A stretch of 64,000 nucleotides of DNA from Rebecca billardiae RCC1528 (Eukaryota; Protista; Haptophyta), in NCBI GenBank assembly GCA_965240325.2, contig OZ251233.1, forward strand, positions 1,426,001 through 1,490,000, read 5' to 3'. The notes beneath the pieces are model-generated. The model ran no database searches and was not told where the DNA came from. It was given only the letters and a program-made list of their open reading frames with translations. Each line of letters begins with the position of its first letter. The first letter of the stretch is position 1. Shown piece after piece: positions 18,401-63,815 of the stretch. The translations under genes were made by a program, and so were the position numbers.

Positions 18401-21400
18401 GGCGGTGGGCTGGGAGGTGGGCTCGGCGGTGGGCTCGGCGGTGGGCTCGGCGGTGGCGACGGTGGTGGCGAGGGCGGTGGGCTCGGAGGCGGGCTGGGTG
18501 GTGGGCTCGGCGGCGGTGAAGGTGGCGGTGAGGGCGGCGGTGAGGGCGGTGGGCTCGGCGGCGGGCTCGGCGGCGGGCTTGGCGGCGGGCTCGGCGGCGG
18601 TGAGGGCGGCGGTGAAGGCGGTGGGCTGGGAGGTGGGCTCGGCGGTGGGCTCGGCGGTGGGCTCGGGGGTGGCGACGGTGGTGGTGACGGCGGTGGCGAG
18701 GGCGGTGGGCTCGGCGGTGGGCTCGGCGGCGGTGAGGGCGGCGGTGAGGGCGGCGGTGAGGGCGGTGGGCTCGGAGGTGGGCTGGGCGGCGGGCTCGGGG
18801 GTGGCGACGGTGGTGGCGAGGGCGGTGGGCTCGGAGGCGGGCTCGGCGGCGGGCTCGGCGGCGGCGAGGGCGGCGGGCTCGGCGGCGGTGAGGGCGGCGG
18901 TGAAGGCGGTGGGCTGGGAGGTGGGCTCGGCGGTGGGCTCGGCGGTGGGCTCGGCGGTGGCGACGGTGGTGGTGACGGCGGTGGGCTCGGCGGTGGGCTC
19001 GGCGGCGGTGAGGGCGGCGGTGAGGGCGGCGGTGAAGGCGGTGGGCTGGGAGGTGGGCTTGGCGGTGGGCTTGGCGGTGGGCTCGGCGGTGGCGACGGTG
19101 GTGGCGAGGGCGGTGGGCTGGGCGGCGGGCTGGGTGGTGGGCTCGGCGGCGGGGAAGGTGGTGGTGAGGGCGGCGGTGAGGGCGGTGGGCTCGGCGGCGG
19201 GCTCGGCGGCGGGCTTGGCGGCGGTGAGGGCGGCGGTGAAGGCGGTGGGCTGGGAGGTGGGCTCGGCGGTGGGCTCGGCGGTGGGCTCGGTGGTGGCGAC
19301 GGTGGTGGCGACGGCGGTGGGCTCGGAGGCGGGCTCGGCGGCGGGCTCGGCGGCGGCGAGGGCGGCGGCGAGGGCGGCGGTGAGGGCGGCGGGCTCGGAG
19401 GCGGGCTCGGAGGCGGGCTCGGCGGTGGCGAGGGCGGTGGCGAGGGCGGTGGGCTCGGCGGTGGGGTGGGAGGCGGACTGGGCGGCGGTGAAGGCGGCGG
19501 TGAGGGCGGCGGTGAGGGCGGTGGGCTGGGTGGCGGGCTGGGTGGCGGCCTTGGCGGCGGCGACGGCGGCGGCGACGGGGGCGGGCTTGGCGGCGGGCTC
19601 GGTGGTGGCGATGGTGGTGGGCTCGGTGGAGGGCTCGGCGGTGGGCTCGGTGGTGGTGATGGTGGCGGGCTTGGTGGCGGGCTGGGCGGCGGGCTGGGCG
19701 GCGGGCTGGGTGGTGGGGATGGCGGCGGCGGCGATGGAGGAGGACTCGGCGGTGGGCTTGGCGGTGGGCTGGGGGGCGGACTCGGTGGTGGTGATGGTGG
19801 CGGAGATGGCGGTGGGCTGGGCGGCGGTCTGGGCGGCGGGCTCGGTGGCGGGCTGGGTGGTGGTGATGGCGGTGGGCTCGGTGGTGGCGACGGTGGCGGG
19901 CTCGGTGGTGGGCTCGGTGGTGGCGGGCTCGGCGGTGGGCTCGGCGGTGGGCTCGGCGGTGGCGACGGGGGCGGGCTCGGCGGCGGGCTGGGTGGTGGCG
20001 ATGGTGGCGGGCTTGGTGGTGGGCTTGGCGGTGGGCTCGGTGGTGGCGATGGTGGTGGGCTTGGCGGTGGGCTGGGTGGCGGGGACGGCGGCGGGCTCGG
20101 CGGTGGCGAGGGCGGCGGTGGCGACGGGGGGGGGCTGGGCGGTGGGCTCGGCGGTGGCGATGGTGGCGGGCTCGGTGGCGGGCTCGGCGGGGGGCTGGGC
20201 GGCGGGCTGGGTGGCGGAGACGGCGGTGGGCTCGGCGGAGGGCTGGGCGGTGGTGATGGCGGCGGGCTCGGTGGTGGCGATGGTGGCGGGCTCGGTGGTG
20301 GGCTCGGAGGTGGCGGGCTCGGTGGCGGGCTTGGCGGTGGAGAGGGTGGTGGCGACGGCGGCGGGCTTGGCGGAGGGCTCGGTGGTGGGGACGGCGGTGG
20401 ACTCGGCGGTGGGCTGGGTGGCGGGCTCGGCGGTGGGCTCGGCGGTGGCGACGGCGGCGGGCTGGGTGGTGGGCTCGGTGGCGGGGACGGCGGCGGGCTC
20501 GGCGGTGGCGAGGGCGGTGGTGGCGATGGAGGTGGGCTGGGCGGCGGGCTCGGCGGTGGCGATGGTGGTGGGCTCGGTGGCGGGCTGGGCGGAGGGCTGG
20601 GCGGAGGGCTCGGCGGTGGGCTCGGCGGCGGTGACGGTGGCGGAGACGGTGGTGGACTCGGCGGCGGGCTCGGCGGCGGAGGTGACGGTGGTGGGCTCGG
20701 TGGAGGGCTCGGTGGTGGCGACGGTGGTGGTGATGGCGGCGGGCTCGGTGGTGGCGACGGTGGTGGGCTCGGTGGTGGGCTCGGTGGTGGCGGGCTCGGC
20801 GGTGGGCTCGGCGGTGGGCTCGGCGGTGGCGACGGGGGCGGGCTCGGCGGCGGGCTTGGTGGTGGTGATGGTGGTGGGCTCGGTGGCGGGCTCGGCGGTG
20901 GGCTCGGCGGTGGCGATGGTGGCGGGCTTGGTGGTGGGCTGGGTGGCGGGGACGGCGGCGGGCTCGGCGGTGGCGAGGGTGGCGGTGGCGACGGAGGTGG
21001 GCTGGGCGGTGGGCTCGGCGGTGGCGATGGTGGCGGGCTCGGTGGCGGGCTCGGCGGAGGGCTCGGCGGCGGGCTGGGCGGCGGGCTCGGTGGCGGAGAC
21101 GGCGGTGGAGACGGTGGCGGGCTGGGCGGCGGGCTCGGTGGTGGCGATGGTGGCGGGCTCGGTGGTGGGCTCGGAGGCGGCGGGCTCGGTGGAGGGCTTG
21201 GCGGTGGGGAGGGCGGTGGCGACGGCGGCGGGCTTGGCGGCGGGCTCGGCGGCGGTGAGGGCGGCGGTGAAGGCGGTGGGCTGGGTGGCGGGCTCGGCGG
21301 TGGGGTCGGCGGTGGCGACGGCGGTGGGCTTGGTGGTGGGCTCGGTGGCGGGGACGGCGGCGGGCTCGGCGGTGGCGAGGGCGGCGGTGGCGATGGAGGT

Positions 21401-41036: not shown

Positions 41037-41717
41037 TCACGCGGCAGTCAGTGGAGCCGTCAGATGTGGCGAGGCGCGCGGGGTGCAAACGATGTAAATC
41101 GCAATGAACACGAGTACCACGTGAAGCGAAATGATCGTGAGGAACGGCGATGCAGCCATCCATGCTTTGGGGTGATTACCATCCTCGAGGAAAATGACAG
41201 TGCTGTTTGCAACGGATCCGATGATGTCGAGCACTGTGATGCCGAAGCTGTAGCCCTCGATCGAGTGCGTGCGGAGGAAGATGATAAATTGCGGGAAGAA
41301 CCCCGCGGCAAAACAGCCCGCCGGGAAGAACTCGCCCAGCGTCTCCACGAACTCCTCGGGGACGAGTCGGAAGAGGAGGCTGATGCCGAGTCCGAGCAAA
41401 ACCGACCCAGCAAAGATGAGAGGTGCGAGCTGCCACACGCGGGACTTGGAGCTGTGGTCGTACACAATCATCTGCGCCTCTATCGTCGCCGAGAGGCTGA
41501 CGAAGGCGGCCATCGAAGCGATCAGCCAGAACGATTCGTGGCCGGTATAAAGCGCGGCACCGTAAACTATGGAGCCGAAGTGCCATAAGAGGATGAGGCT
41601 CACGGAGAGGCCCTCCGTGGACCTGCGCCGCGCGTTCAGTACTGCTTGTGGAGCCTGCAGCGATGCGAAGCATGCAGCACCGATCGACCCGCACACCGCC
41701 AACGCCACTTTCTCCAT
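41037..41717 (-). CDS. PQ-loop repeat membrane transporter (226 aa)
   Basis: Two PQ-loop motifs (LQAPQAVLNARRRSTEGLS; FFPQFIIFLRTHSIEGYS) and ~7 hydrophobic helices. Confidence 0.9.
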   Translation of the reverse strand: MEKVALAVCGSIGAACFASLQAPQAVLNARRRSTEGLSVSLILLWHFGSIVYGAALYTGHESFWLIASMAAFVSLSATIEAQMIVYDHSSKSRVWQLAPLIFAGSVLLGLGISLLFRLVPEEFVETLGEFFPAGCFAAGFFPQFIIFLRTHSIEGYSFGITVLDIIGSVANSTVIFLEDGNHPKAWMAASPFLTIISLHVVLVFIAIYIVCTPRASPHLTAPLTAA

Positions 41718-41959
41718 GGTGTGCGGTGGCCGTGGACTCGTGGAGAGAATCTATCTTGTGTGTCCGTTGGCGCCTTGAGGCGGACGCGAACGCACCGGTT
41801 CGGAGGCCCGCGCTTATTATCAGAGAGCCTGATGTAGTAACGTGTGGGTAGGGTATCATAATAGTGCAGAGTTTCATAGTCATATGATAGTCGTACGGTA
41901 GATAGTCGTAGTTGAATAACCGTCATATTCATCCGAGGACGCGGAGCCCGCCACGCAGC

Positions 41960-42829
41960 ATGGCGTCGGCTCACGCTGCCGGCCTGCCCTTCGCGCAGGT
42001 GCTGATCGACGCGGTTGTGGCGGGTTGTACGCAGGCCTTCGAGGACGAGGGGATGGGTGCCGAGCTGCCCGTGCTCCATCGCCTATTCCTCGACAAGATG
42101 GCCGCGACTCTGAGCGCGCCGGGCGCGACCGAGCGTCGGGTGCTCACGGCAGCGAGCGGCGTCGGCCCAGCGGCAGACGGCGGCCGCGCGGCCGCAGACG
42201 ACGACGATCGCGCCGCCGACGTCGCCGGCCCAGTCGATCGTTTGCTGCACCCGTCGGGGATCGTGCCCCGCGTCGACAACGTGATGGCGCACGCCAACCT
42301 CGGCTGCCAGGTCGAGCTCGCTCAGGTCGCGCGCGGCGCGCTCAACGTGGTCTACGTGCCGACGCGGCACGCGGCGCTGAGCATGTACTTCCTGCGGCCC
42401 AAGGGCGCGGTGCAGCTGTACGCCTCGGGCAAGCTGGTGTGCACGGGCGCGCGCTCCGAGGCCGACGCGGGGACGATCGCGCGCAAGTGCGCCGCGATCG
42501 TCAAGCGGCTCGGCTGCGAAGGGGCGAACCTGCAGGCGTTCAAGGTGACCAACATGTTTGCGTCGTGCGAGCTCTCGTTCGAGCTGCGGCTGTCGCACCT
42601 GGCGCAGGCCCTGGGCGCGGAGGCGGAGTACAACCCGGAGCGCGCGCCCAAGCTGACGTGGCACAGGCGCGCCGAGCCGCCCGTCGTCTTCGAGATCTCC
42701 GCCAAGGGGCACGTCGGCCTCTCGGGCACGACAAGGGAGGCGGACTTCAGCACCGCGCTGGAGGGCGCGTTCCCGACGCTGCGCGCGTACGCGCTCGCGC
42801 GCGACGTGGCGCAGCCGGCGGCGGCGTGA
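41960..42829 (+). CDS. Divergent TBP-like factor with N-terminal TFIIA-large-subunit-like helical domain (289 aa, intronless)
   Basis: Both TBP saddle repeats are present (HPSGIVPRVDNVMAHANLGC...YASGKLVCTGARSE...ARKCAAIVKRLG...FKVTNMFASCEL.F.LRL...EYNPE). The N-terminus FAQVLIDAVVAGCTQAFEDEGMGAELPVLHRLFLDKM matches the TFIIA alpha/Toa1 N-terminal helices. Confidence 0.88.
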   Translation: MASAHAAGLPFAQVLIDAVVAGCTQAFEDEGMGAELPVLHRLFLDKMAATLSAPGATERRVLTAASGVGPAADGGRAAADDDDRAADVAGPVDRLLHPSGIVPRVDNVMAHANLGCQVELAQVARGALNVVYVPTRHAALSMYFLRPKGAVQLYASGKLVCTGARSEADAGTIARKCAAIVKRLGCEGANLQAFKVTNMFASCELSFELRLSHLAQALGAEAEYNPERAPKLTWHRRAEPPVVFEISAKGHVGLSGTTREADFSTALEGAFPTLRAYALARDVAQPAAA

Positions 42830-43220: not shown

Positions 43221-44246
43221 ATGGCCGGTGCCCCCGATTCCGTGGCGCTTCTGCTCTTCTTCCTGTTCTGGTACGTGGGGAATGCCTTCTACAACCAGTA
43301 CAACACGCAGGCGCTCGCCGCCGTCGGCGGCAAGCACGGCGGTCTCACCATGACGGTGTCCACGATGCAGCTCGGCGTGTGCACATTGTACGCGCTCGTC
43401 CTGTGGCTGGTCCGCCTCAACCCGATCAAGCTCTTCGGGCTGCAGCTGCCGGAGAAGATGTCGATCCCGAAGATCACGATGAAGGACCTCATCGCCACGC
43501 TGCCCGTCGGCTTCTGCTCCGCCGCCGCGCACTCGGCGGGCGTGTTCTGCCTCGGCGCCGATCCGCTGTTCGGCCAGATCGTCAAGGCGGGCGAGCCCGT
43601 CATGTCGGCGGGCGTGAACACGGTCTTCTATGGCAAGGCGCCGTCGAAGGCCAAGTTCGTCTGCCTGATCTTCATCGTCGCCGGCGTTGCCTTCGCCAGC
43701 TTGAAGAAGGGCGCGGACGGCGCGTACGCACTCAAGTTTGACGAGCGCGCGCTGCTCTTCGGCATGATCGGCAACACGTTCGCCGCGTTCAAGGGCTCGG
43801 AGAACAAGAAGCTGATGGAGACGAAGGGCATCAAGGACCGCTTCGCCGGCGTCGCCAACCAGTTCGCCGTGACCGAGGTCCTGGCCTTCCTCATCTCTCT
43901 GCCGGTCATGTTCTTGACCGAGGGCGCAAAGTTCGGCAAGTTCTGCGAGCTGATGACCACCAACCGCGACCTGCAGATCGGCCTCGCCATCTCCGGCATG
44001 TCGTTCTACCTGTACAACGAGCTGGCGACCATGACGATCAAGTCGACGGGCGCCGTCACCTCCTCGGTCGCCAACACGGCCAAGCGCGTGATCGTGATGG
44101 TTTATATGGCCGCCGTCACGGGCAAGGCGCTCACCGAGGAGCAGAAGATCGGCGCGGCGGTTGCGATCGGCTTCGTGCTCGTGTACTCGGTCATCGATGA
44201 CATCGTCAAGGCGATGTCGGGCGGGGACAAGAAGAAGAAGCAGTGA
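43221..44246 (+). CDS. Triose-phosphate/phosphate translocator family protein (341 aa), no N-terminal presequence
   Basis: TPT motifs FWYVGNAFYNQYN, FGQIVKAGEPVMSA, FYLYNELA, VTSSVANTAKRVIV and GAAVAIGFVLVYS; C-terminal KKKKQ. Confidence 0.93.
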   Translation: MAGAPDSVALLLFFLFWYVGNAFYNQYNTQALAAVGGKHGGLTMTVSTMQLGVCTLYALVLWLVRLNPIKLFGLQLPEKMSIPKITMKDLIATLPVGFCSAAAHSAGVFCLGADPLFGQIVKAGEPVMSAGVNTVFYGKAPSKAKFVCLIFIVAGVAFASLKKGADGAYALKFDERALLFGMIGNTFAAFKGSENKKLMETKGIKDRFAGVANQFAVTEVLAFLISLPVMFLTEGAKFGKFCELMTTNRDLQIGLAISGMSFYLYNELATMTIKSTGAVTSSVANTAKRVIVMVYMAAVTGKALTEEQKIGAAVAIGFVLVYSVIDDIVKAMSGGDKKKKQ

Positions 44247-48542: not shown

Positions 48543-51256
48543 ATGTCAACGCCAGTGGCGCCGTGGCCGCGTCGCCCGTCTGCTCTCGACGCGGAGACGG
48601 AGCGCGTCGTCGATTCCAACTCCCGCCTCTCGGACTGGGAGGTGTTCGAGGACGTGCGCCCCGCCGAGCTCACGCCCTGGGGCCGCTTCAAGGATGCCAA
48701 CGTCGAGGCGAGCTACCGCCGCGATCTGCGCGCGTCGCTGACGCTCGGGCTGATCCGCGTCAGCGTGTTCATCTCGTCCCTCGCGGCGTTGATTCACGTG
48801 GTTTCGATCACGCGGAACAGGGGCGCCATCTCGCTCTACGACCTGGTCGGCCTGATCTTCATCGGCTGGACCGTCCTCTTTGTCGCGCTCGTACACGCGG
48901 CGCGCCGCACGACGCGCGTGCCTCTCGACCTGATCGAGGCGGCGGCGGTCGTGTGGTTCACGACGGTGCTGGCCAAGCTCACGACGCTCTTCCCGTCGCG
49001 GCTCGACGCGCTCGAGGCGGGCACCCTGGACTCCGCCGAGGGCCCGCCCGCCCTCGGCATCCTGCTGCGCGCGTGCACCGTGATGATCATCTCCACGCTG
49101 TTCACGACGCTGCAGCTGCCGCACGCCGTGTGCCTCTACCTGTGCGCGGTGGTGGCGACGGCGGCGGGCGAGGTGCTGCTGCCGATGACGCACTCGTCAA
49201 CCGCGATGCAGGACCTCGGCCTCGTCGTCCTCCTCTCCTTCGCCGTCTCCGGCGCCACGCTCCACCGGCACCGCGTCGAGAGGCAGGAGTGGCACCACCG
49301 GCACGCAATCATCTCCGCGGCCAGGGAGTGGCGCGCGACCAAGCGCGCGGAGCTCGAGGCGCTGGCGCGCGCGCACGAGGCGGAGGTGGCGACGCAGGCG
49401 CGCGCCAAGTTGATCCGCGTCGTGATGCACGACCTGCGCTCGCCGCTGCTCGCCGTGCGCAACATGGCCGACGCGCTCGCCGACCTCGCGCCCGACACGC
49501 GGCTGGCCGACCCGTTCGTGCGGCGGTGCACGAGCGCGCTGCACACGTGCACGACGCTGATGGAGCAGATCGTGAGCGACATGCTCGACTTCGAGCGGAT
49601 CGACTCGGGGCGCATGTCCCTCGCCCGCGCCCCCTTCGCCATCGCGCAGCTCCTCTCCGACGCCGAGCTCGCCTTCGCCTCGCTCGCCGGCTCGCAGGGT
49701 GTCGAGCTCACCTTTGAGCCGCTGCCGCCCGAGCTCGCCTCGGCCGTGCTCGTCGGCGACGAGCGCCGGCTGCTGCAGTGCCTGAGCAACGGGCTGAGCA
49801 ACGCGAGCAAGGCGCGCGCGCGCGCGCGGCGCGCGGCGCAGCCGGCGCGGCCACGCGTCGCACTGCGCCCCCGCTCCACGCCGACCGCACAGCGCGCGCA
49901 TGCGCTCACCACCACCACCCGTCGCTGCGGCCCCGCTGCATCCGCTACCCCGTCGGCGTGCGCGCGCACGCAGTTCACGGAGCGTGGCGGCCAGATCCAC
50001 GTGCACGTCACGTCGGGCGAGCGACGCACCTCTGCGTCCGGCGACGTGCTCGAGTGCGTCGTGATCTCTGTCGAGGACGACGGGATCGGCCTCGCACCCG
50101 ACGAGCTCATGCTGCTGCGCTCGGGCGACGTTTTCCAGCAGGTGCGCGGCGCGGCGCGCGCGGCAGAGCGACTCGGGCGGACGGAGAGTGCATGCTGCGT
50201 GCATGTGTGTTTGCTCAGTACATCCATGTCTGCTGCTCGGTGGGGCGGGGCATCCGGGCACGCTGCGCTGGCGCTGCTAGGCATCGCGGCCTGCGCGCGC
50301 GCACAAGCACGTTGTCGCGCCTCGCCTCATCACCACTCGCGCGCGCGGTGCCCATGTCGCGCGTGCCACCGGCGCGGCGGCAGGTGGGCCGGGGCCAGCT
50401 GCAGGGCAACGGCGGCACCGGGCTCGGCCTCAACATCGTGCGGCAGATCCTGCTGCTGCACGACGACTCGCAGCTGCACATGAGCTCCGACGGGCTCGGC
50501 TGCGGCACTCGCTTCCAGATGCGGCTCTACTTGCCGAGCGCTGGGGGGAACGAGGCGGCGCAGGTGCGCTCGCGGTACATGTCTGCCAAGACGCTGGCGC
50601 TCGCGAGCGAGGGCGAGGCGACGCGCCTCGCGAGGGAGGACTCCTCGCGCGCGTCGTCGCGCAGAGACTCGTCGCGCAGGGGCTCGACGCGCGCGACGCC
50701 TTCTGCCGGCGCGTCGCCCGCCGTCGGCGCGCGGCCCGTGCGCGCCGTGCTGCACAGCCTTGACAAAGGCGACGCCGGGCCTGCCGACGGGCCCGCGGGG
50801 CCGGCCGCACCCGGCGGGCGCGCGGTGGCCTGCTTGCACGTCGAGGACGACCTGATGCTGCAGATGACGCTGGGGGTGCGGCTCTTCGGCGCGCCGGGCA
50901 TCGAGTGCGACGTGGCGGGCGACGGGCGCGAGGCGCTCGAGCTCGTCGCGCGCCGCGCCGCCGAGGGCCGCCCCGCGTACGACCTGGTGGTGCTGGACAA
51001 CCAGATGCCGCACATGGGCGGCGTGGCGGCGGCGAGGGAGCTGCGCGCGGGCGGCTTCGGCGGCACGATCATCGGCATGACCGGCGACCCCGTCGGCAGC
51101 CCGGACCGCGAGGAGTTCGCGGCGGCCGGCCTGACGCACTGCGTGGACAAGACCCCCGACGGGATGGCCATCATCGCCGACGAGATCCAGCAGCGGCTCG
51201 TCGCCATCGGGCTCGCGCTGCCGGCACCGACGCCGCTGGGGCCGGCAGCGGAATGA
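48543..51256 (+). CDS. Membrane-bound hybrid sensor histidine kinase (TM sensor-HisKA-HATPase-receiver); introns 49812-49973 (GC-AG), 50142-50383
   Basis: ~6 TM helices; H-box VMHDLRSPL; N-box CLSNGLSNASK|FT; G1 VEDDGIGL; G2 GGTGLGLNIV; receiver HVEDD...LDNQMP...GMTG...DK. Confidence 0.93.
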
Positions 51257-51924
51257 CGTGTGCGGCGGGCCGTACGGGCGAGCGGGCACCAGGCTGCCTG
51301 CCATCCGCATCATGCCAGGTGCCTGGGCAACGGTCCGCAGCCGTGCCGGCCATGCCCAGGCGTCCAAGTCGTCCGGCATCCCATTAACGCACGCGGTGCC
51401 ACCTCTGACAACTACTACTATCGTGAACTACCGCTGCCCAGCCCCGGCCACAGACGACTACTAGCTATTGGAGCTGAGCAGGTTCACAACTGCTGACCGG
51501 ATGCTAAGACCCGCAATGTGAATGAGTCAATCATCAGCAATGACCTCGTCACAGCAATATAATAATGCGGCCTGTCGCCTATTGGGAGAGCGGGCCCGGG
51601 GTAGCGGACTCGCGGTGGGCCGTGCTGCCGCAATCTGTCAGTGTCTGTGCAACGGTACAGCGATTCGCCCGCGGACTGCCGCAGTACTACAGCATGAGTG
51701 TCTGACGACTGGTTGGCGAGTGCGTCACACCACGTTCCGGATGCCTCGCACCAGGATTCTGACGCGCGTTCGGACTCGGAGCCGGCCCACAGACCGAGTT
51801 CAGGTCGGTCGTGCACGGACCCTCGGGCCGCGCTGCGTCAGCGTGCGCGCTGGACCGCGTGGTGCGGTGGTGCCAACCACCATATTGGCGCGCGAATTCG
51901 AGCATGCGAAATATCTTGCATAGA

Positions 51925-52570
51925 CGACAGTCGCCTGTCGGCTTTGGGTCGCGCGGAGCAGTGAGTGCGACCGCGCGCCAAGCGCCCAGCTGCAGCGCGC
52001 CGCGTCACGGCCTCAACTGGCCAATGCAGCCGCATCTGGTCCCATGAGCCTAGCAATGGACTGAGGCTCCGATTCTGCCGAGCGCGAACTCGTGCATAGA
52101 CCGAGACAATAGTCGGCTGTCGGCTTTGGTCCGCGCGGAGCAGTGAGTGCGACCGCGCGCCAAGCGCCCAGCTGCGCAACGGCCTCAACGAATGCAACTA
52201 TCTGGTCCCGCAAGCAAGGCCAAGCAGCGGTCGGTCGACCGAGGCTCATTCCGAACCGCACCGGCACCCTTCGTGAAACATTGCGGCGGTCGAGCGATTG
52301 GCAGGGGCGTGGCCGCATCGTATCGAGTGCACGTCGCGCTCAGGCGTCTGCTCACTGCACACGCGCTGTGTTCGCGCAGCTCGAGCACTGTGCCTCGTCG
52401 TTCGCGACCGCAGGTCCGTGACTGTCGTTCGTTGCACTCCGTGAAACGCGCGCACGAGGGGTTCTTGAGACGCGCCGAGCGGCAAGTAGGCGGTCGACCA
52501 GTCGTGCAGGGGCGTGACCGCATCATCTTTCGCGCGTGTCGCGCTCAGGCGCCTGCTCACTCCGCACGTA
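51925..52570. repeat. Degenerate direct duplications, possible TE remnant
   Basis: A ~70-bp block (GTCGGCTTTGG...GCGCGGAGCAGTGAGTGCGACCGCGCGCCAAGCGCCCAGCTGC) occurs at ~51935 and ~52118. A second diverged pair (GCAGGGGCGTG.CCGCATC...GTCGCGCTCAGGCG.CTGCTCACT) occurs at ~52301 and ~52506. Confidence 0.6.
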
Positions 52571-54359
52571 CTGTGTCACCGCGCGGCTTGGCGGTCTGTG
52601 CGGAGACGTGCGGTGATTGGTTGATTGATGCCGCGGATCGTGACATCGGCCGGCTAGCGGCGAGCTCGGCGGGCGAGAGACGCAATCAGAGCTTGGCGCG
52701 AGGCAAGAAGCGCGCGACGGCCATGCACTGCGCCGCGGACGCGCCTCCCCCCGACGGGCATCGTGGCCACAGCAGCCCGGGTGCGCGCCTCACGGCGGAG
52801 CCCTGCGGCGGCTGCGGCTTGAGGAGCTGCATGCGGCCCCGTTGCGCTCGAGACGCGTCGCGACACGACTCGGGGCGATGGCCGACGCGACGGGAGTGGT
52901 GGGTTTGGCAGTCCGCGGCGGTTATCGCGTTATGACTGCCGCGTCGCTGCTCCGCCGCCGCCCGTGCCCCTCCCCGCTAGGTGGGCGTATACCTGGCCGG
53001 ACGCGGGCTCGGCGCTCGCAGCGGCATCGCCGGAGTGACCGCACGGTGACGAGATGTGAGTCGGAAGCAGCTCGCCTTTGCGGCGCGGGTACCAAGCGGA
53101 AAGTGAGCGTACCTGCAGGAGGGCCGACCCTCGGCGTGACAGGCGCACCTTCGGGGCCGGTCAGGGCAGCCCACGTCGTGCAGCCGACCGCTTCCGCCGC
53201 GACTGCCCCCCGGCGCACCCTGCCCCGGCCGACGCCTGAGCACAGCGGCCCCGCCCGGGCCCGGGGCCCCCGGGCGGCAGGCCGCGGCGGCGCCGGCACA
53301 CTCACGGACAGCCAGCGGCGCTCCTCCGCCTCCTTCGCTCCCCGTTCCTCGTTGTCCCCCCCTGGCGTGGTGCGCGTGCATCACGCTCGAACTCTCACGA
53401 TGCTGCTTCGGCGTCCTTCTGCGGCGGCATCCGACGGTCGTGCGCACTGCGAGGCGGAGCGCGAGGTGCTGGGCACTGCCGTCCGTCGTGCTCCCTCCTC
53501 CTCATGGCCCACTGCTTTACTCGAGGGGAACGCTCAGCGCCTTCTGCTTCTCTCATCCGCTCGTGCGCGACCACGCTTGTGCTGGGTGTCCTTCTGAGGC
53601 GTCCGGTGGCCGGGCGCACATCGGGGACGCACATCGGGGTGGTAAGTGAGGTGCCGGTGCGCTGCCGTCCGTCGTGCGCGCTCCTCGCTCATCTCCACCT
53701 GCTTCGCTCGAGCGTGGGCGCGCTCGGCGCTGTCTGCCTCGCTCGCGCGCGAGCGCATTTTGGCGCTGGACGAGACTCGTGCGCATCCATGCTGCTTCTG
53801 CGTCCATCGGCAGCGTCCGGCGGCTGGGCGCACGGCGGGGCGGCGCCAGCGGGCGTGTGTCGGGCACGCTCCACGCTCCTCACCAGCTGCTGCGCGCTCG
53901 CGGGGGCGTACTCAACAACACGCTCCTCACCAGCTGCTGCGCGCTCGCGGGGGCGCGCTCAACAACACCTTCTGCCCTTCGTCCGAGCTGGAGCGCATGT
54001 CGGCGGCGCGGGCAGTGAGCGCACACATGCTACTTCGGCGTCCCGTTCTCGGCCATCTGTTGGGCGGCCGGCGGGGCGGCGCGTGAGGTGTCGTTGCGCT
54101 GTCGTCCGTCGGGCACACTCGTCGCTCATCACCTTCTACTTCGCTTGAGCGGAACCGCGCGCTTCATCACCTTCGATCTGCCCCCCGCTCGAGCGAGCGC
54201 GCTTCTTCGGCGCGGGCCCCTCGGGGCGCAACAGCGGAGCCGCGCGCGCTCCGCGTGTTCGCGCTCGCCGCACGCCGCTGCCGCGCTGCAAGCACGCCGC
54301 CGCCACTCGCCGCCGCACGACTCACCCTTCTCTACAGCTCGCCGTCGCTCACTCGCGCG

Positions 54360-54436
54360 TCTATCTGTCTATCTATCTGTCTATCTATCTGTCTATCTGT
54401 CTATCTGTCTATCTGTCTATCTGTCTATCTGTCTAT
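54360..54436. repeat. (CTAT/CTGT)n tetranucleotide microsatellite
   Basis: Directly visible. Confidence 0.95.
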
Positions 54437-54489
54437 CCCTCGCGCGCGCGCCGATCATCATGCGCCGATCATCGTGTGCGCACCCTATC

Positions 54490-55095
54490 TTCTCCGCGCG
54501 TCACTTGCGCCTATCTCATCTCCGCGCGTTACTTGCGCCTACTATCTACTTCTCCGCGCGTTACTTGCGCCTGTCTCCGCGCGTCACTTGCGCCTATCTA
54601 CTTCTCCGCGCGTTACTTGCGCCTACTATATCTACTTCCCCACGCGTTACTTGCGCCTGTCTCCGCGCGTCACTTGCGCCTATACCTCCTCCGCGCGTTA
54701 CTTGCGCCTATACTATCTACTTCTCCGCGCGTTACTTGCGCCTGTCTCCGCGCGTTACTTGCGCCTACTATATCTTCTCCGCGCGTTTACTTGCGCCTAT
54801 CTTCTCCGCGCGTTACTTGCGCCTGTCTCCGCGCGTTACTTGCGCCTACTATATCTTCTCCGCGCGTTACTTGCGCCTATCTTCTCCGCGCGTTACTTGC
54901 GCCTGTCTCCGCGCGTTACTTGCGCCTACTATATCTTCTCCGCGCGTTTACTTGCGCCTATCTTCTCCGCGCGTTACTTGCGCCTGTCTCCGCGCGTTAC
55001 TTGCGCCTACTATATCTTCTCCGCGCGTTACTTGCGCCTATCTTCTCCGCGCGTTACTTGCGCCTATCTCCTCCGCGCGTTACTTGCGCCTATGT
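54490..55095. repeat. Minisatellite, ~22 copies of core CTCCGCGCGTTACTTGCGCCT with short variable linkers
   Basis: Directly visible tandem array inside the split-direct-repeat element. Confidence 0.92.
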
Positions 55096-57867
55096 CCTCC
55101 GCGCCTATCGTCTCCGCGCGCATCTTCTCCGCGCGTCACTCGCACCTGTCTTCTCATGCGCGCGCGCCGATCATCATCATGTGCGCGCGCCGATCATCAC
55201 TTCGTGCTCAGCGTAACCATCGCATCATCATCCGGGTGCCGAGCGTGCCATCATCGCACACACCTTTCGGCGCGCTTACATGGGCGTACGTGGTGTCTGT
55301 GGCCGGGGCGTGGGGGACGACGTCGTCGGCGGGCTGGCGTTGATACCCGCGCGCGCCGATCATCATTCGTGCTCCGCGCAACCATCATCATCATTCGGGT
55401 GCCGAGTGCGCCATCCTCGCGCGCACCTTTCGGCGCGCTTACATGGGTGTACGTGGTGTCTGTGGCCGGGGTGTCGGGGACGACGTTGTCGGCGGGCCGG
55501 CGTTGATACCTGCGCCGCGTGGCGGCTCTGGCGGATGCAGCTCTCGCCGGTCGGCTGCCACTGCAGCGGGGCGCGCGCGCTGCTGGGCGTTTTCGGGCGC
55601 GAAAAGCGACGTGGCCCGCTGGCCACCTGCGGCGCTTTCACCTGGCCTTGGTCTTCCTCGCTCGTCACCTTCTGCGTCGCTCGAGCGCGCACGCGCTCAT
55701 CGTCGTCAATCACCTCCTGTCTATCGCTCGAACCGCTGCTTTCCGTTCCGTTCCGTTTCTACGCGCGTTCCTTTCCTCACGCCGAGCGTGCCTGGCCCTT
55801 CCCGCCACGCGCCACGCGTTCCTCTCCCATTCCTGTGCCATCTTCCTCACTCATCACCTCCTGCTTCGCTCGAGCGCTCGAACGTGGTCGCGTTCATCGT
55901 CAATCGCCTTGTGCCTCTCGCGCGAGCCGTTGCGGCGAATTCGTCACGCGCGCGCATGGTCATGCGCGCGCGCCGATCATCGCGTGACGATCATCATGCG
56001 CGCGCACCGACCAGCGCCGATCATCATGCGCGCGCGCCGTCATGCGCGCGCGCCGAGTATCATGCGCCGTTTATCATGCGCGCGCTCCGATCCGCCCGCG
56101 CGTGCACCGCTCATCGTGCGCGCGCACCGATCGTCATTCGTGCGCCGCACGGCCATCACCATTCGCGCACCGTGCGCGTCACCTCGCACGCCCCTTTTCG
56201 GCGCGCTTTCACGGGCGCTCGTGCGGTCTGCAGGCGCGTGGTTGACGACGTTGTCGGCAAGCCGACGTCGATACCTGCGCCTCATGTCGGCTCGGGTGTG
56301 TTCCGCGACGGCTCGGGCGCATGCGCTCTCGCCGGCCGGCGGCGGCGGCGGCGGTGCGCGCGTGCTGCTGGGCGGTTTCGTCGGGCAAGTGGACGGCGTG
56401 GCCTGCGGGTCACCTGCAGCGCTTCGCCTGGCCTGTGCCGGCGCGCGACGACGGGCGGGTTACGCCAGTGGTCCTGTGGTCCGCCGGTCGCTGCGGGCTC
56501 TCGGCGACCTCTGGCAGGGGCTGAGCGCTGGGGGGGAGGGGGGGGGGGCACCCAGTCCGCCGCTCCGCGGCCTCACACCGGCGGCGTGCGGCGTGGTGGT
56601 GGGCAGGGCGCTGCGCCTCTGGGGGTCGGGGCCGGGCCTGGCCTCGGCCGCGCCGGCCGACGCCGGCCACGCCGGCGTGGCGCCTGGCGCTGCGCCTCTT
56701 TGGGCGGGCGCTGCCTCGCCGCCCTGCCCCCCCCCGTGGCGACTGGCGGCCCCAGGCAACCCCTGCATCCGCCTATCGTAAACACCGGATCGCCAGAAGG
56801 AGCGCGACGCGCGCGCGGTTATGGGGCGATGGCCGACGCGACGGGAGTGGTGGGTTTGGCAGTCCGCGGCGGTTATCGCGTTATGACTGCCGCGTCGCTG
56901 CTCCGCCGCCGCCCGTGCCCCTCCCCGCTAGGTGGGCGTATACCTGGCCGGACGCGGGCTCGGCGCTCGCAGCGGCATCGCCGGAGTGACCGCACGGTGA
57001 CGAGATGTGAGTCGGAAGCAGCTCGCCTTTGCGGCGCGGGTACCAAGCGGAAAGTGAGCGTACCTGCAGGAGGGCCGACCCTCGGCGTGACAGGCGCACC
57101 TTCGGGGCCGGTCAGGGCAGCCCACGTCGTGCAGCCGACCGCTTCCGCCGCGACTGCCCCCCGGCGCACCCTGCCCCGGCCGACGCCTGAGCACAGCGGC
57201 CCCGCCCGGGCCCGGGGCCCCCGGGCGGCAGGCCGCGGCGGCGCCGGCACACTCACGGACAGCCAGCGGCGCTCCTCCGCCTCCCGCCCGCCCTCCCTGG
57301 CGTGGGATCGCCGCGCTGGGGTGGGTGCGGCTTGAGTCAGCGTCCACGGGGGGGGCGATGTGCTGCCGGGCGGGCGCTGCCTCGCCGCCCTGCCCCCCCC
57401 CGTGGCGACTGGCGGCCCCAGGCAACCCCTGCATCCGCCTATCGTAAACACCGGATCGCCAGAAGGAGCGCGACGCGCGCGCGGTCATCAGCTCTCAAAG
57501 AGCTGGCGAGCTTGGGCTTCGTATATGTATTCTGCTTCTCTTTGATGCGCCTCTTCGATTTTCGCGTAATGCGGTCCGGTGCCGTCTCGATTGTTGGCGG
57601 TTCACATTCCAATCGTTTTCGTTTGCGCCCGATCTCTGGCTGCTCGAATCCTCGTCAAGAATTCGAATCGTGTATCTGAAACGCGACATTTTTCTAGTAG
57701 AAGTCGAAGTTTGTAAATAACGAGGCCAGCCGATATCCGGACAAACTCCTTGGACCAGTATGCGCCGCCATCGTGATTCGCGCTCGCGGGTTTGGTACAC
57801 GGGCCCTCCGGGCCCGCATTATATTATAACGTACCGCGCGCGCGAAATCGTCGCCGCCATCGGCATC

Positions 57868-57871
<4 letters not shown>

Positions 57872-57961
<90 letters not shown>
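57872..57961. repeat. (AT)n microsatellite, ~45 units
   Basis: Directly visible. Confidence 0.98.
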
Positions 57962-57963
<2 letters not shown>

Positions 57964-58183
57964 GATGATCGAATGCTGACGAATGCCGGCGGAGGCGGAA
58001 TGGCATCATCAGTGATGATCAACTACTATCAGCAAGCGTCACGGGCGCGCCGTGGCCACTTGGCACTTCTGATATATCGATGGGATGATGGGGTGACTGA
58101 CTCGCGTGATCGGATTGCTTGGCCGTGCTCGGACGAGCAGGCACCTTTTCCGCTGCAGGGAGACCGCGGGTTCGAGGCACGTC

Positions 58184-58839
58184 TCAGAGCTTGACCGTGC
58201 ACACGTTGTCGTCGCCGCTGCTGCAGCCCATGTCCAGCCCTTCGGAATGGTCGAACGAGTTGGAGCCGAGGTAGGGGTTGCTCGTCGTCCACCAGATCAC
58301 GCTGCCCTGCGGCGGGCGGGAGCGGCGGAGGGGCGGAGCGGGCGCGGCAAGAGTTGGGGCCCGCGCGTACGCGCGCGCGCGCCGCTCGCCTGCTCCCTCG
58401 CTGCCCGCCTCACGCGCGAGGCAGGCGCGGCGGCTCTGCGCGCCGCGCCGTGACCGGGCCGCACCATATCGTCCGCCGTAAACTCCGCCTGCCGGCGCCC
58501 GCGGCGAGGCAGCCGCGATGCGCGGCCGGATGCCAGGGCGCGAGGCACGACGCCAGTCAGCGCACGGTGCGCGTGCGGCGTCACCCGTGCCCGCGCCTCG
58601 CGCGCACGCGGACGCGCGCGCACGAGGCAATCGGTCACGCCGGTGGCAAAGCCGTTGGACTCGACGGTGTAATTGTAGTCGTTGCCCGGGTCGAGGTTGT
58701 GGGGCGCGGCTTTTGTGAAGCGACCAGAGCCGTAGCAGTCGTACTCCCCGCCCTTGGTGAGCGTATAGTGCTCCGTCGACCACTCGGCCACCTTGATGAA
58801 CACTTGTGTGGAGCGCGCGCTGTTGGACGGCGCCGCCAT
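58184..58839 (-). CDS. Small (120 aa) aegerolysin/Cry34-like beta-sandwich protein; exons 58624-58839, 58465-58488, 58184-58306
   Basis: Two GT-AG introns and a 24-nt microexon give ...GRFTKAAPHNLDPGNDYNYTVESNGFATGVTDCL|AEFTADDM|GSVIWWTTSNPYLGSNSFDHSEGLDMGCSSGDDNVCTVKL. ES.GF.TG and W..PY.GSN are typical of this fold family. Confidence 0.7.
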
Positions 58840-58964
58840 CGTGCCCACGGTGCCAACGGTCCGAAAATCCGAAAGCCCGCGGAAAGGGGCGGGCGGCCGG
58901 ACGCGGGGCCGCCGCCCGCGGCGGAACGATGGCGGCCGCCGCCCTGAGTTGAGCGCTGCTTGGG

Positions 58965-59837
58965 ATGCGGCGTGGCCCGCCAGGCCTGAACGGGCTGTCG
59001 ACGGTGTGCGCGCTGCAGGCAGGCGCCGACGGTCCCTCCTGCCTCCTGCTCCTCGGCGACGCGAGCAACGCCCTGGCTATCGCCGCGGCAGGTCGGGCAC
59101 CCATTGCGCCACCGGGTGCCGCCGCGCACACCGAGGTGTGCGTCTCGCACATCGTGTGCGTCGCTGACGCGAGGCCAGCCCGCGAGATACAGCGCGCCAT
59201 CGAGGGCTCGACGACGCGCGCACCTCGCCTTGCTGTGTGCGCCATGTCCGACTGGAAGCGGCCGGACGAGTGCGTCGTCATCCACGAGGAGCTCGCGGAG
59301 CCCCTCGCCGCCGTCGCGGCGTCGGTGCGCGCGACGCCGCCCCCGGACATGCCCGCCACGGCCGAGCGCGGCGTGCTCGTCCATTGCACGCGCGGGCACA
59401 ATCGCTCGCCCGCGCTCGTCCTCGCGGCGCTCGTCCAGCTGGGCTGCTCGCTGCGCGACGCCTACCGGCTGCTCATGCGCGCGCGGCCCGACTGCGACCC
59501 ACTGCCTGCGTACCGCGCCGGGCTGCGCGCCTTCGAGCTGGCCTTGCGCGGTGGGTCGACGGTCTCGCCGGACGAGCTCTTCGCGATGCACATCTCGCAG
59601 CTGATGCAGCTCTCGCGCAATGGCGCGCTGCCCAGCGAAGCCTCCGACGAGTACTTTGGCGACGACGCCGACCCGCTCGAGGTGGCGCTGGACGCGCGCG
59701 ACAGCGCGGTGGACGCGCTCCTCGCCGAGCGGCGACTGCCGCCGCTGAGCGGGAGCGCGCCGACTATCGTGGTGTCCGGCGAGTACCTCAGGCTAGGCGC
59801 ACAGAGCGGGCCTGGTCAACATCAGCCAGGCATCTAA
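58965..59837 (+). CDS. Dual-specificity protein phosphatase-like
   Basis: Catalytic signature VLVHCTRGHNRS (HCxxGxxRS), followed by ALVLAALVQLGCSLRDAYRLLMRARP; upstream LLLGD...VSHIVCVA. Confidence 0.88.
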   Translation: MRRGPPGLNGLSTVCALQAGADGPSCLLLLGDASNALAIAAAGRAPIAPPGAAAHTEVCVSHIVCVADARPAREIQRAIEGSTTRAPRLAVCAMSDWKRPDECVVIHEELAEPLAAVAASVRATPPPDMPATAERGVLVHCTRGHNRSPALVLAALVQLGCSLRDAYRLLMRARPDCDPLPAYRAGLRAFELALRGGSTVSPDELFAMHISQLMQLSRNGALPSEASDEYFGDDADPLEVALDARDSAVDALLAERRLPPLSGSAPTIVVSGEYLRLGAQSGPGQHQPGI

Positions 59838-61047
59838 CTTCCGGCATCATCCGGAGCGAAGCGGGGTCTGCTGAATCAGCAGCCAGCAGCAGTACCAGGT
59901 AGATGAGTACAGTAGGCGCAGCAGTAGGCTGAGTAGTGAGTAGCGCGCCTCCGCGCATCACGCGCTGCCGCCTGAGCCCCTGACGACAGACACGCATCAT
60001 CATCAGCACTGCTTCATTGGACGGACGGACGTATTCGCGTCGTAGATCAGATCATCGTCGTAGTCGTCAATGATGATGATCGACGATGATGACGATGCTA
60101 TATAGCTGCGCGCGCTGATGAGGATAGATATGATGATGACACTGGCGCCACGCGACTGCTGAGTCTGCTGACTATGCGCGAGCTGATGCTACGCGACGAC
60201 GACTACGACGACGAGGCCTCTTCGAGCTCAGCGCGCTCGCCTTGGACGTTAGGTCGCAGAATGTGGTGCGGATCCTCTGCTGTTCGCGTGCACGAACGCG
60301 AGCGCTGCATTGCTCACACGTTGGGACCGCTGCGGCCTAGGCTCACGATGGCGCGAGGGGCGCTGGTGACAAGCGCGTGCGGGTGGCACGTGGTCATCTT
60401 CATCTCTAGCTGAAGCTCGTGCGCACATGCGCACCTGGCGTTGAGCGCAGCAAGCACCATCACCTTCACCTCAGCAGCGGTCGTTAGGGATGCCGCCTCG
60501 AGTTCGCACACCGCCAGCCACAGTCGGCAGATGTCCTCACGCGTGAGCTGCGGCTGCTGCGGTGCCTGAGCAGCATTGGTGCAGGCCGCGGACCGAGGCC
60601 GAGCCACGGCGGCGGCACTTGAGGCGCGGGAGTGCTACGTGACTGTTGTGTCCGAGTAGCGGCGCCGAAGGCGAAGTCCGCCGCGAGTGTAGTCACTCTC
60701 AGGTTGGCTCACTGGCCGCAGCGAAGGCAGCCTCACGCGGCAGCACGACTGTCGTCGACTCTCACGTTCTGTGACTCGACTGCGGTCGGATCACGGCTGT
60801 TCACAGATCAGTGGAGTTACAGTAGTGAGTCGTAGACATTCGATCGTCGTAGCTACGGAGTCTGGCAGGCCGCAGGCGACATCTGTGAGTCGTACTTCAA
60901 TAACTGCTGCGACGGAGAGACCGCGGCGGGCCCCAACTGCGTCGTTGATTCGATCTACGGAAAAGGCCCGCGCGCGCGCGGAACGCGGTCATCATCTCTC
61001 TCGTCTCTCTCTCTCTCTCTCTCTCTCGTATATCTCTCTGCTGCTCC

Positions 61048-62596
61048 AGCGTCCGGACTCCGGTCGGGAGGTGTCACCAAACCGAGCTCAGAATGAGGAG
61101 TGTACCGAGCTAAGCGGATGTACCATGGTACACTTTGGTACATAATTGGTACACGATTGGTACATGTTAGAGATGTACCAAGTGTACCAATAGTGTACCA
61201 ATGGTGTACCAATAGTGTACCAAAGTGTACCAACGCATCCTGACAATGTACCAAATGTCATTGGGTGTACCATGGTACACTTTGGTACCGATCCACATAG
61301 CACGTGTTGGTACATTACCTGATGTACCAACTCCTCCCAAATGTACCAACTCGTCCGAAGAATGTACCAATGTGTCCCAACGATGTACCAAATGTACCAT
61401 ACCATGTGTACCAACCGTCCCCCAATGTACCATCAATGTACCAACTTTTCATGAATGTACCAATATAGTGTACCATCGTCGGCGATTCAGACGGCTGGTA
61501 CACTTTCCTGGGTGTACCTGGTACACCCAGAATCCCTGGTACATCCTCACACAGTTTGTCCACGATGATCCGCAAATGACGATGGGCCTCCCAGCGCGCG
61601 TGTTCTAGCAGCCACGACGCGCACTCGGCGTAGCCAGCGTAAGCAGCACCACCAGGCGCGTACCCATCGAGACGGCGCTTGTAATTGGCAGCAGAGCTGC
61701 AACGCTGCGTGGCGTAGCGGTGCCACAGCTAGCGGGCGGGCGGAAGAAAACGCGAGCAGAGCGTGCGTCATCGTGTGGAAGGGGATCAGCAACCACGCCG
61801 CAGCGATGTTCGTGGCGGTCGAAGACGAGCGCCCCCACGACGAGCATCAGAGCCATGGATGGATGGACGGGCGCACCTTGACCTTCCCGGACGGCTGGTT
61901 CAGTAGATGGTACACTCGTGCCGGAGTTGGTACACTTTTGGTACACCCTGCTGGGCCGAGTTGGTACATTCAGCGGAAATTTGGTACACTTGGTACATTT
62001 TCAGGACGAGTTGGTACACTGTTGGTACACCCTGGACCAAGTTGGTACATTCCGCGGAAATTTGGTACACTTATTGGTACATTTTCAGGACGAGTTGGTA
62101 CATTTTTTGGTACACCCTGGGACAAGTTGGTACACTTTGGGGAGCAGTTGGTACATTATCAGGGAGGAGTTGGTACACTTGGTACACTTTTGTGTGCAAA
62201 CTGGTACTACATGGTTGGTACACGTTGGTACACTCATGAAATGTACCAAAGTGTACCATTTATGTACCAAAGTGTACATGGTACACCCAATGACATTTGG
62301 TACATTGTCAGGATGCGTTGGTACACTTTGGTACACTATTGGTACACTATTGGTACACTATTGGTACACTATTGGTACAGTATTATTGGTACACTTGGTA
62401 CATCTTTACATGTACCAATAGTGTACCAATAGTGTACCAATTATGTACCAAAGTGTACCATGGTACATCCGCTTAGCTCGGTACACTCCGGTTCTGAGCT
62501 CGCGGTTTGGTCGATCTACCCGACTCCGGTCAGCGGAAAACCCTCGGTGTGAGCTCGCACCTCGCAAGGTTTTCCGCTGACCGGAGTCCGGACGCT
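61048..62596. mobile_element. GTAC-rich foldback (inverted-repeat) element with dense subterminal TTGGTACAC/GTGTACCAA motifs
   Basis: Inner TIR GGAGTGTACCGAGCTAAGCGGATGTACCATGGTACACTTTGGTACATAATTGGTACAC from 61097 is mirrored ending at 62489. A degenerate outer IR extends to 61048/62596. GC-rich unique core at ~61560-61900. No clear TSD. Confidence 0.75.
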
Positions 62597-62693
62597 CCGA
62601 GGTCCGTCTCATGTCATACATCGCATCCGACGGGGCTCCGCACTGGCGCTTTCGCCCCCAGTAGTGGTATTTTGTAAGCCCCTTGATGATGAT

Positions 62694-62694
<1 letters not shown>

Positions 62695-62734
<40 letters not shown>
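62695..62734. repeat. (CT)n microsatellite (a second lies at ~60995-61027)
   Basis: Directly visible. Confidence 0.95.
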
Positions 62735-62737
<3 letters not shown>

Positions 62738-62954
62738 CGGATGACGATATCGATGATTCGACGCGCGGTTCAGACGCGCGCACGCGCGCGATATATTCTA
62801 CGACTACGACGACTGCCGCCACTGCTATGCACCTCGATTCTCGAACCGAGACAAAGTAGCCTGCGCTTGCGTCGTCATTCTCGTAGTATCCGAATTGTCT
62901 GTCCCACACGAGCGCGGCTTGCTGCGCCCGGATCCCCCATCGGATCATCAGGTC

Positions 62955-63815
62955 TCAGGTCTGCAGCTGCGCATCGTCGTTCGCAGCCGCCCCGCGCGCG
63001 GCAGCACCGGCTGCCTCGCCGGCTGCTCCAGCCGCTGCATTTGGCGTCGCGGCTGGCTGTCCGGCGTCGCGGCTCGAGAAGGAGCCAATCGGCGGCAGCG
63101 GCGAGGTGGCGGAGGACGAGCGGCCGGTGGTGGGCAGGCTGGGCGGCGGGCCCGGCAGCGCGGACGCGGCCGGCAGTGGCGCCGCCGCGACGGGCTGCGG
63201 CAGCGCCGACGCCGTGCCCTCGCGCGCCACCGGCGGCAGCGCCGCCGGCGGCGCGCGTCGGATGGTCGGGTCGACGGGCGGCAGCGTGGCCGAGCCCCTT
63301 CGGGTGTCTGCGAGCGTGGGCGGCTGCCGCACCGACTCGACCGGCCCGGCCGAGGCCGGCGCGGCCCGGCTTGTGTCGGCGCGCGCGGGCGCGGGCGTCA
63401 CCGCCGCCGCGCCGGGCGGCGGCGGCGCCGGGCGCACGCGCTCGGCAGGCGGCGGCGGCGGCGGCTGCTGCTGGCCGGCGGGCGCGGACGGCGGGCCGTC
63501 CGCCGAATCGTCCCCGGGCGCGACCTGCGTGCGAGAGCTCCTCTTCGGCGAGCGGCTGAATCCCTGCCCAGCGGACGGCCCGGCAGAGCCGTCGCCCGTC
63601 GTCGCGGCGGCGCCGCCGACCCCGGCCTCGTCCTCGTCCGAGACGCGCACCTCTTCGACCACGCGCTTGCGCCGCCACCAGCCGAAGGCGCACAGGGCGG
63701 CGCAGCACAGCAGCGCCGCGATGGTCAGTCCGACGGACAGCCCGACTATGCTGCCCGTGTCCAGGGCCGGCTCGCTCGCCCTGGCGGCCGTCGCGCCGGA
63801 GGGAGCGCTTCCACT

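Follow-up and report, generated by a model that had tools for sequence, protein, structure and literature searches.

The contact between TBP and TFIIA is among the oldest and best-studied in eukaryotic transcription initiation. In TFIIA, the hairpin of the large subunit (TFIIA alpha/Toa1) pairs with the N-terminal hairpin of the small one (gamma/Toa2), and the two together make the TFIIA four-helix bundle. The TBP paralogue TRF2 of animals has even been called a subunit of TFIIA, so tightly are the two bound. The four-helix bundle projects away from TBP and the DNA, and also contacts activators (PMC10716077). TRF2 is described as restricted to animals (PMC4180970), and in dinoflagellates a TBP-like factor (TLF) is said to replace TBP (PMC5029490).

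The window studied here (the whole stretch of 64,000 nucleotides that was analysed) contains a gene in which a TBP-like core is preceded by a two-helix hairpin resembling that of TFIIA alpha. The initial annotation had placed residues ~11-47, an Ala/Asp linker and a complete TBP core in one exon, and this arrangement was borne out by the ORF, by Pfam and by the AlphaFold2 model. The parts of the gene are the following:

41960..42829, + strand: whole predicted coding sequence, 289 amino acids plus stop, with no need for an intron (ORF reading, start-codon analysis, and the orthologues P0002-P0005, P0059 and P0060)
41969..42046, + strand: helix 1 of the TFIIA-alpha-like hairpin, residues 4-29, matching TFIIA Y..VI.DVI..VR..F (AlphaFold2, pLDDT about 90; hhalign; merged alignment)
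42047..42061, + strand: inter-helix loop, residues 30-34, EGMGA, counterpart of TFIIA D-G-[VI]-D-E and shorter by one residue
42062..42115, + strand: helix 2, residues 35-52, ELPVLHRLFLDKMAATLS, counterpart of TFIIA L..L..LW..KL, with Phe replacing the TFIIA Trp
42116..42244, + strand: disordered linker, residues 53-95 (pLDDT 24-41; alignment; highest dN of the three regions)
42245..42793, + strand: TBP-like core, residues 96-278, with repeat 1 at ~103-183 and repeat 2 at ~193-276 (Pfam, PDB alignment to plant TBP, invariant columns)

The coding sequence is one unbroken ORF on the + strand, from an ATG at 41960 to a stop codon that ends at 42829. This ATG is the first in frame, with an in-frame stop 17 codons upstream and no in-frame ATG upstream. 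It has A at -3 and G at +4, and the same purine(-3)/G(+4) context surrounds the equivalent ATG in five orthologous loci; 5' of the ATG, no sequence conservation was seen among the orthologous loci. Met32 is invariant among the orthologues and aligns, in the merged alignment, with the buried Val/Ile of the TFIIA G-[VI]-D-E loop. Since residues 9-31 are conserved at the protein level, without indels, and Met32 occupies this buried position, a start at Met32 is unlikely, and so is the case that the initial annotation had named against itself, translation from a downstream Met that excludes the hairpin. Note that the database gene call of the orthologue P0060 (L006:1139-2122) begins 21 codons early, with an overlap onto the 5' end of the divergent PQ-loop gene; P0060 has its conserved Met at L006:1202.

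The gene stands between two transporter genes in the window:

41037..41717, - strand: PQ-loop transporter gene, head-to-head with the TBP-like gene (Pfam PF04193, E=7e-20; synteny)
41718..41959, no strand: divergent intergenic region of 242 bp, shared with the PQ-loop gene (base composition)
43221..44246, + strand: downstream neighbour, a gene of the triose-phosphate/nucleotide-sugar transporter family (Pfam TPT, E=5.5e-54)

A head-to-head PQ-loop neighbour was also present at the four orthologous places with an identifiable neighbour (L001, L002/L003, L004/L005 and L006). In L002-L006 the start codons of the pair are 45-61 bp apart, forming a very compact, conserved bidirectional pair with no room for an upstream exon. 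In the window, the last 120 nt before the ATG at 41960 have 48% GC, compared with about 70% for the window, and 41718-41959 probably acts as a bidirectional promoter. Because the downstream genes differ in L004/L005 (an unknown 193-aa ORF, then an IBR/RING E3 ligase), synteny is kept on the upstream side only. As regards the rest of the window, near-identical ORFs among the decoys of the HMM searches recur every 1563 bp on the + strand at about 1200-6000 (starts at 1214, 2777, 4340 and 5903), and on the - strand in steps of 1563-1692 bp (48843, 50535, 53919, 55611, 57303, 58866, 60429, 61992 and 63555), which suggests that long tandem arrays, at about 1200-6000 (+) and about 48800-63600 (-), flank a gene-bearing middle. 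The interval 16000-24000 stands out from the rest of the window by its GC content of 0.78-0.81 and strongly positive GC skew (0.36-0.51).

The identity of the C-terminal domain was clear from standard searches. Pfam TBP (PF00352) matched the 289-aa protein in two stretches with E=1e-33 (115 bits, against a cut-off of 22.9), and the two tandem TBP repeats that make the saddle are both present. The closest relatives of the core in the PDB were TBP chains from plant, yeast and human, which aligned with residues 83-277 at E about 1e-35, and the order of strands and helices in the AlphaFold2 model fits two TBP repeats. In human TBP, the phenylalanines that kink the TATA box are F193, F210, F284 and F301 (PMC3142196). 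The positions of these TATA-intercalating residues, taken from the alignment to plant TBP, are occupied by H137, Y154, A229 and S247 in the window protein, and none of the six orthologues has a Phe at any of them, the residues there being H, Y, S/A and T/S. The DNA-contacting Asn107 and Asn198 are kept and invariant in the alignment, as is much of the scaffold. A basic patch on helix H2 of the N-terminal lobe, together with the stirrup, is the signature of contact with TFIIA and regulators (PMC7221094); here R175-K176 and the stirrup R146-P147-x-G149 are invariant, the residue after R-K is Cys in place of Tyr, and there are differences at other basic positions. With all four TATA phenylalanines replaced, the protein falls with the TBP-related factors of TLF/TRF2 type and not with canonical TBP. 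As judged from its sequence, the core belongs with the TBP-related factors that do not recognise TATA, with a predicted TLF/TRF2-like function.

AlphaFold2 predicted two helices in the N-terminus, at residues 4-29 and 35-52, with a pLDDT of 75-80 in the full-length protein and of about 90 when 58 residues were folded alone (overall 75-92). They are followed by a disordered stretch at about residues 54-100 (pLDDT 24-41). The linker is rich in Ala and Asp, with DDDD at residues 80-83 inside an acidic patch at residues 80-87 (nt 42197-42220); its length and sequence vary among the orthologues, and every one of them has the acidic patch. The order of hairpin, variable spacer, acidic patch and globular C-terminal domain is thus the layout of the TFIIA large subunit, with the beta-barrel swapped for a TBP-like core. 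The C-terminal beta-barrel domain of TFIIA is absent, as PF03153 had no match across the 289 amino acids and the C-terminal two thirds are the TBP core. Therefore, the protein is not a TFIIA large subunit, and carries its alpha hairpin only.

Standard searches with the N-terminus did not retrieve TFIIA. The Pfam TFIIA model (PF03153), which the initial annotation had named as a test that could refute it, gave no match at E<=10 with the full protein, with residues 1-100 or 1-50, or with five orthologous N-termini, and the TFIIA signal emerged solely with purpose-built profiles. The sole Pfam match among the N-termini was a stray one to DUF7692, in one member (E=0.13). Searches of the PDB with phmmer and with hmmsearch and the profile gave nothing at E<=10 with the N-terminus. 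When the N-terminal profile was run against 1.84 billion representatives, no TFIIA was found, just the orthologues and three low-complexity repeat proteins, which were rejected as spurious. In the ESM Atlas, the feature search with the hairpin gave nothing, and the shape search gave generic hairpins only.

Structure comparison was compatible with TFIIA. Foldseek of the hairpin against 350,542 PDB chains gave six matches only, none of them significant (E 7-9), and ranks 1, 2 and 4 were yeast Toa1 (1rm1_C, 1ytf_B and 5fyw_U), with an rmsd of 1.1-1.4 A and a probability of 0.41-0.44. VIA alignment to Toa1 gave Z scores of 5.6-5.7, with an rmsd of 1.6 A over 45 residues for 1ytf_B. The wide structural search with VIA returned generic helical hairpins with Z 6-7, and is uninformative for a hairpin of 58 residues. 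Since shape-only searches yield generic hairpins at similar or higher Z, the fold agrees with TFIIA and is no proof of it.

To go beyond the Pfam model, profiles of the TFIIA N-terminus were built from human and yeast segments identical to PDB 1nvp_B and 1nh2_B (the TFIIA seed segments as a whole matched 1nvp_B, 1nh2_B and 1nh2_C), and extended with database fragments carrying PF03153 and with about 45 full-length environmental ORFs for the TFIIA large subunit, obtained in a metagenome scan seeded by the beta C-terminus and carrying both the alpha hairpin and the beta C-terminus. The query profile was the seven-sequence alignment of the orthologous hairpins, and the two were compared by hhalign, with these results:

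human TFIIA alone: P=7e-4, probability 26%
3 TFIIA sequences: P=9e-6, probability 83%
14 TFIIA sequences: P=5.7e-7, probability 92%
57 diverse TFIIA sequences: P=2.4e-8 over 49 aligned columns, probability 95%
only the 19 most diverged protist-like TFIIA sequences: P=4.4e-7, probability 93%

Thus, the P-value gained steadily with the diversity of TFIIA, which is the behaviour expected of true homologues. With the 14-sequence profile, the observed score was 34.9, compared to 12.6 for the reversed profile and to a mean of 8.4-9.0 (sd about 2, maximum 14.9) in 600 column permutations, a null that is lenient because shuffling destroys the helical periodicity. In support of these results, the TFIIA N-terminal HMM scored 7/7 hairpins above all of the ~850 six-frame decoys from the window and above 52 archaeal TBPs. 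Reciprocally, in a search of 4276 six-frame ORFs with the hairpin HMM, 24 of the top 25 were TFIIA hairpins, N-terminal as they should be (best E=0.0018), with individual HMMER E-values that were marginal (0.002-1). Statistically, hhalign's own calibration and the reciprocal ranking are the strongest of these results. Note that, taken singly, the sequences closest to the algal hairpin HMM were L020, L030, L037 and L038 (E 0.002-0.14), protist TFIIA large subunits from metagenome contigs with a GC of 0.39-0.42, whose unusual loop reads G-[IV]-P-P and not G-V-D-E.

In the merged alignment, the hydrophobic register of TFIIA is kept with one single-residue deletion, in the loop. The positions kept comprise the aromatic residue that opens helix 1, the [VIL][IL] pairs, R-[DE]-x-F, the acidic loop and L..L..[LI][WF]..K[LMV]. 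The window copy is without the conserved Arg of V-R-[DE], and the near-invariant TFIIA Trp is Phe. Both the proposed resemblance to the TFIIA alpha/Toa1 helices and its extent across the hydrophobic register were upheld, the former by hhalign, by the reciprocal HMM and by the top rank of Toa1 in Foldseek, to which the conservation in seven orthologues adds. Taking all the lines together, we consider it highly likely that the hairpin and the N-terminal helices of TFIIA alpha/Toa1 are homologues.

The initial annotation had also suggested looking for the architecture in other proteomes. Searches of 5.8 billion and 1.84 billion proteins revealed six further proteins with it (P0002-P0005, P0060 and the fragment P0059). 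Of these, P0004 comes from Pavlovales sp. CCMP2436 (Haptophyta, Pavlovophyceae), where it is listed as a hypothetical protein, and the named public orthologues are annotated just as TBP or hypothetical protein, so domain annotation misses the hairpin module entirely. Residues 9-52 align without any indel across the seven sequences. Among the other orthologues, dN was 0.09-0.35 for the hairpin, 0.02-0.21 for the core and 0.18-0.68 for the linker, so that the hairpin is close to the core and below the linker; dN/dS is of limited use here, because extreme GC3 bias depresses dS. Of all the hairpins in the set, that of the window copy has diverged most. The fusion is conserved in a pavlovophyte lineage, and appears to be restricted to a small algal lineage, since just two further 50%-identity clusters carry the hairpin among 1.84 billion representatives.

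With the domain identities, the homology of the hairpin and the conservation of the fusion in this lineage as what is observed, we propose that the protein is a TBP-related factor of TLF/TRF2 type with a tethered TFIIA-alpha hairpin that binds the organism's TFIIA gamma, a reading that we favour as rather likely. The N-terminus would have arisen as a copy of the two-helix hairpin of TFIIA alpha/Toa1 and diverged since. The hairpin keeps a hydrophobic stripe that would stay unburied if it were isolated, and it should hence require a partner, for which gamma is the natural candidate; we infer that it binds the organism's TFIIA gamma or a gamma-containing protein. The acidic disordered tether of about 45 residues would then let the bundle sit as it does in TBP-TFIIA complexes. 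The association with TFIIA would be permanent and independent of concentration, giving a TBP paralogue that is always loaded with TFIIA and a covalent counterpart to the stable TRF2-TFIIA/ALF complex found in animals. Such a factor may work at promoters without a TATA box, or take part in the pre-initiation complex as an accessory bound to TFIIA.

A bolder version of this proposal, which we hold to be unlikely, is that the TFIIA of pavlovophytes has been re-partitioned, with the alpha hairpin on the TBP paralogue and the beta barrel fused to gamma. If this were true, and there were no canonical alpha-beta gene, the complete four-helix bundle would form only on the TBP-like factor, TFIIA and the TBP paralogue would be one obligate two-chain machine, and a canonical TBP, should there be one, would have an alpha-less TFIIA as its partner. 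In the metagenome scan with the TFIIA beta C-terminus, none of the 80 matches most like human had a GC above 0.63 and no gamma-beta fusion was found; the scan gave canonical or fragmentary TFIIA large subunits only, from other organisms of lower GC. The eight ORFs of the scan without an alpha hairpin were plain C-terminal fragments of TFIIA, lacking a gamma domain.

The main functional rival of the favoured reading is sequestration. The hairpin would titrate TFIIA gamma away from the canonical large subunit, and the protein would be mainly a negative regulator, a sink for TFIIA that forms no productive initiation complex. Sequestration of TFIIA has been reported as the way in which animal TLF inhibits TATA promoters (PMC3142196), and the core described here is without the TATA-binding Phe residues. 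However, purifying selection acts on this core, whose dN is lower than the linker's, and many of its scaffold and stirrup residues are invariant, which would be needless for a pure decoy, and TRF2-TFIIA complexes occur at active promoters (PMC5006001); we find the sink distinctly unlikely. Another possibility, which we see as rather improbable, could be that a hairpin derived from TFIIA has lost the binding of gamma, and either forms homodimers, as four-helix bundles of the Rop type, or has a different partner, for instance an activator. Rop/Rom dimers were indeed among the six Foldseek matches, but they fitted much more poorly than Toa1 (rmsd 4.4-4.8 A and probability 0.08-0.11, against 1.1-1.6 A and 0.41-0.44). 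The change of Trp to Phe and the deletion in the loop alter the canonical surface, and the hairpin of Toa1 also binds activation domains (PMC10716077); yet the hydrophobic positions that are conserved in TFIIA are conserved here too.

The two other rivals deny the link with TFIIA or the hairpin itself. If amphipathic hairpins had come to look alike by chance or convergence, the N-terminus would be a lineage-specific extension unrelated to TFIIA. The empty results from the standard libraries and the large databases fit this, as do the generic hairpins that match the model equally by shape and the leniency of the permutation null. Against it, the hhalign P-value drops by more than 4 orders of magnitude as TFIIA diversity is added, and its final value of 2.4e-8 is still significant if multiplied by about 2e4 families; the reciprocal HMM placed TFIIA hairpins correctly in 24 of its top 25, and the top Foldseek match among 350,542 chains belongs to the known partner family of TBP. 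Chance or convergence is, in our judgement, very improbable. Even less credence, to the point of being extremely unlikely, is given to an artefact of the gene model, in which the hairpin is untranslated and the real protein starts at Met32 or downstream. Met32 is invariant and P0006 starts there, but P0006 is merely cut, lacking the first 31 residues because its contig ends (the gene starts at base 2). Moreover, residues 9-31 are conserved without indels in 7 sequences while the sequence 5' of the ATG is unconserved, the ATG at 41960 has a strong context and no in-frame ATG before it, and Met32 falls at the buried Val/Ile of TFIIA.

Under the favoured reading, a TBP-related factor with its own TFIIA-alpha hairpin, the natural fusion of this hairpin to a non-TATA TBP paralogue would add an independent line of evolutionary evidence that paralogues of this type function as TFIIA-bound units. 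It would be a "Rosetta-stone" linkage, in which a fusion reveals the interaction of partners that are encoded separately elsewhere, and would offer a simple system in which to study the role of the four-helix bundle when held beside a TBP-like saddle. The scope is narrow, a small algal class, and the function of the fusion is predicted. The components are well known, and in the literature on the TBP family and TFIIA we found no description of a natural TFIIA-TBP fusion, a natural fusion of two general transcription factors, in agreement with the initial annotation, which knew of no described example.

Compared with the known systems, the algal protein resembles the TFIIA large subunit (TFIIA alpha-beta/Toa1; PF03153) in the equal lengths of the helices, in the hydrophobic register and in the motifs, which are followed in both by a variable spacer with an acidic patch. 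It differs in having a TBP-like core instead of the beta-barrel that contacts TBP and DNA, and in a hairpin that is too diverged for the Pfam model, with a loop one residue shorter and a Phe for the Trp. Like metazoan TRF2/TLF/TBPL1, it is a TBP paralogue with about 35-40% identity to the TBP core and without the TATA-intercalating Phe residues, but metazoan TRF2 binds TFIIA non-covalently and has no TFIIA-derived segment. Orthology of the algal protein to metazoan TRF2 is unlikely, and the likeness that we claim is one of function, in the missing TATA Phe residues and the predicted association with TFIIA, not of membership. The TLF of the dinoflagellate Crypthecodinium cohnii is likewise a protist TBP homologue without the four Phe (PMC5029490), although no TFIIA-like N-terminal module has been reported for it. 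An engineered single-chain TFIIA, with gamma, alpha and beta in one chain, has been deposited as PDB 5m4s_A. In 1995, Stargell and Struhl reportedly fused TBP to Toa2 in yeast and thereby rescued a TFIIA-binding defect. Covalent linkage within the TBP-TFIIA module is thus compatible with function in these constructs; they are, however, laboratory-made, whereas the algal fusion is natural and conserved in its lineage, and joins only the alpha hairpin to a TBP paralogue.
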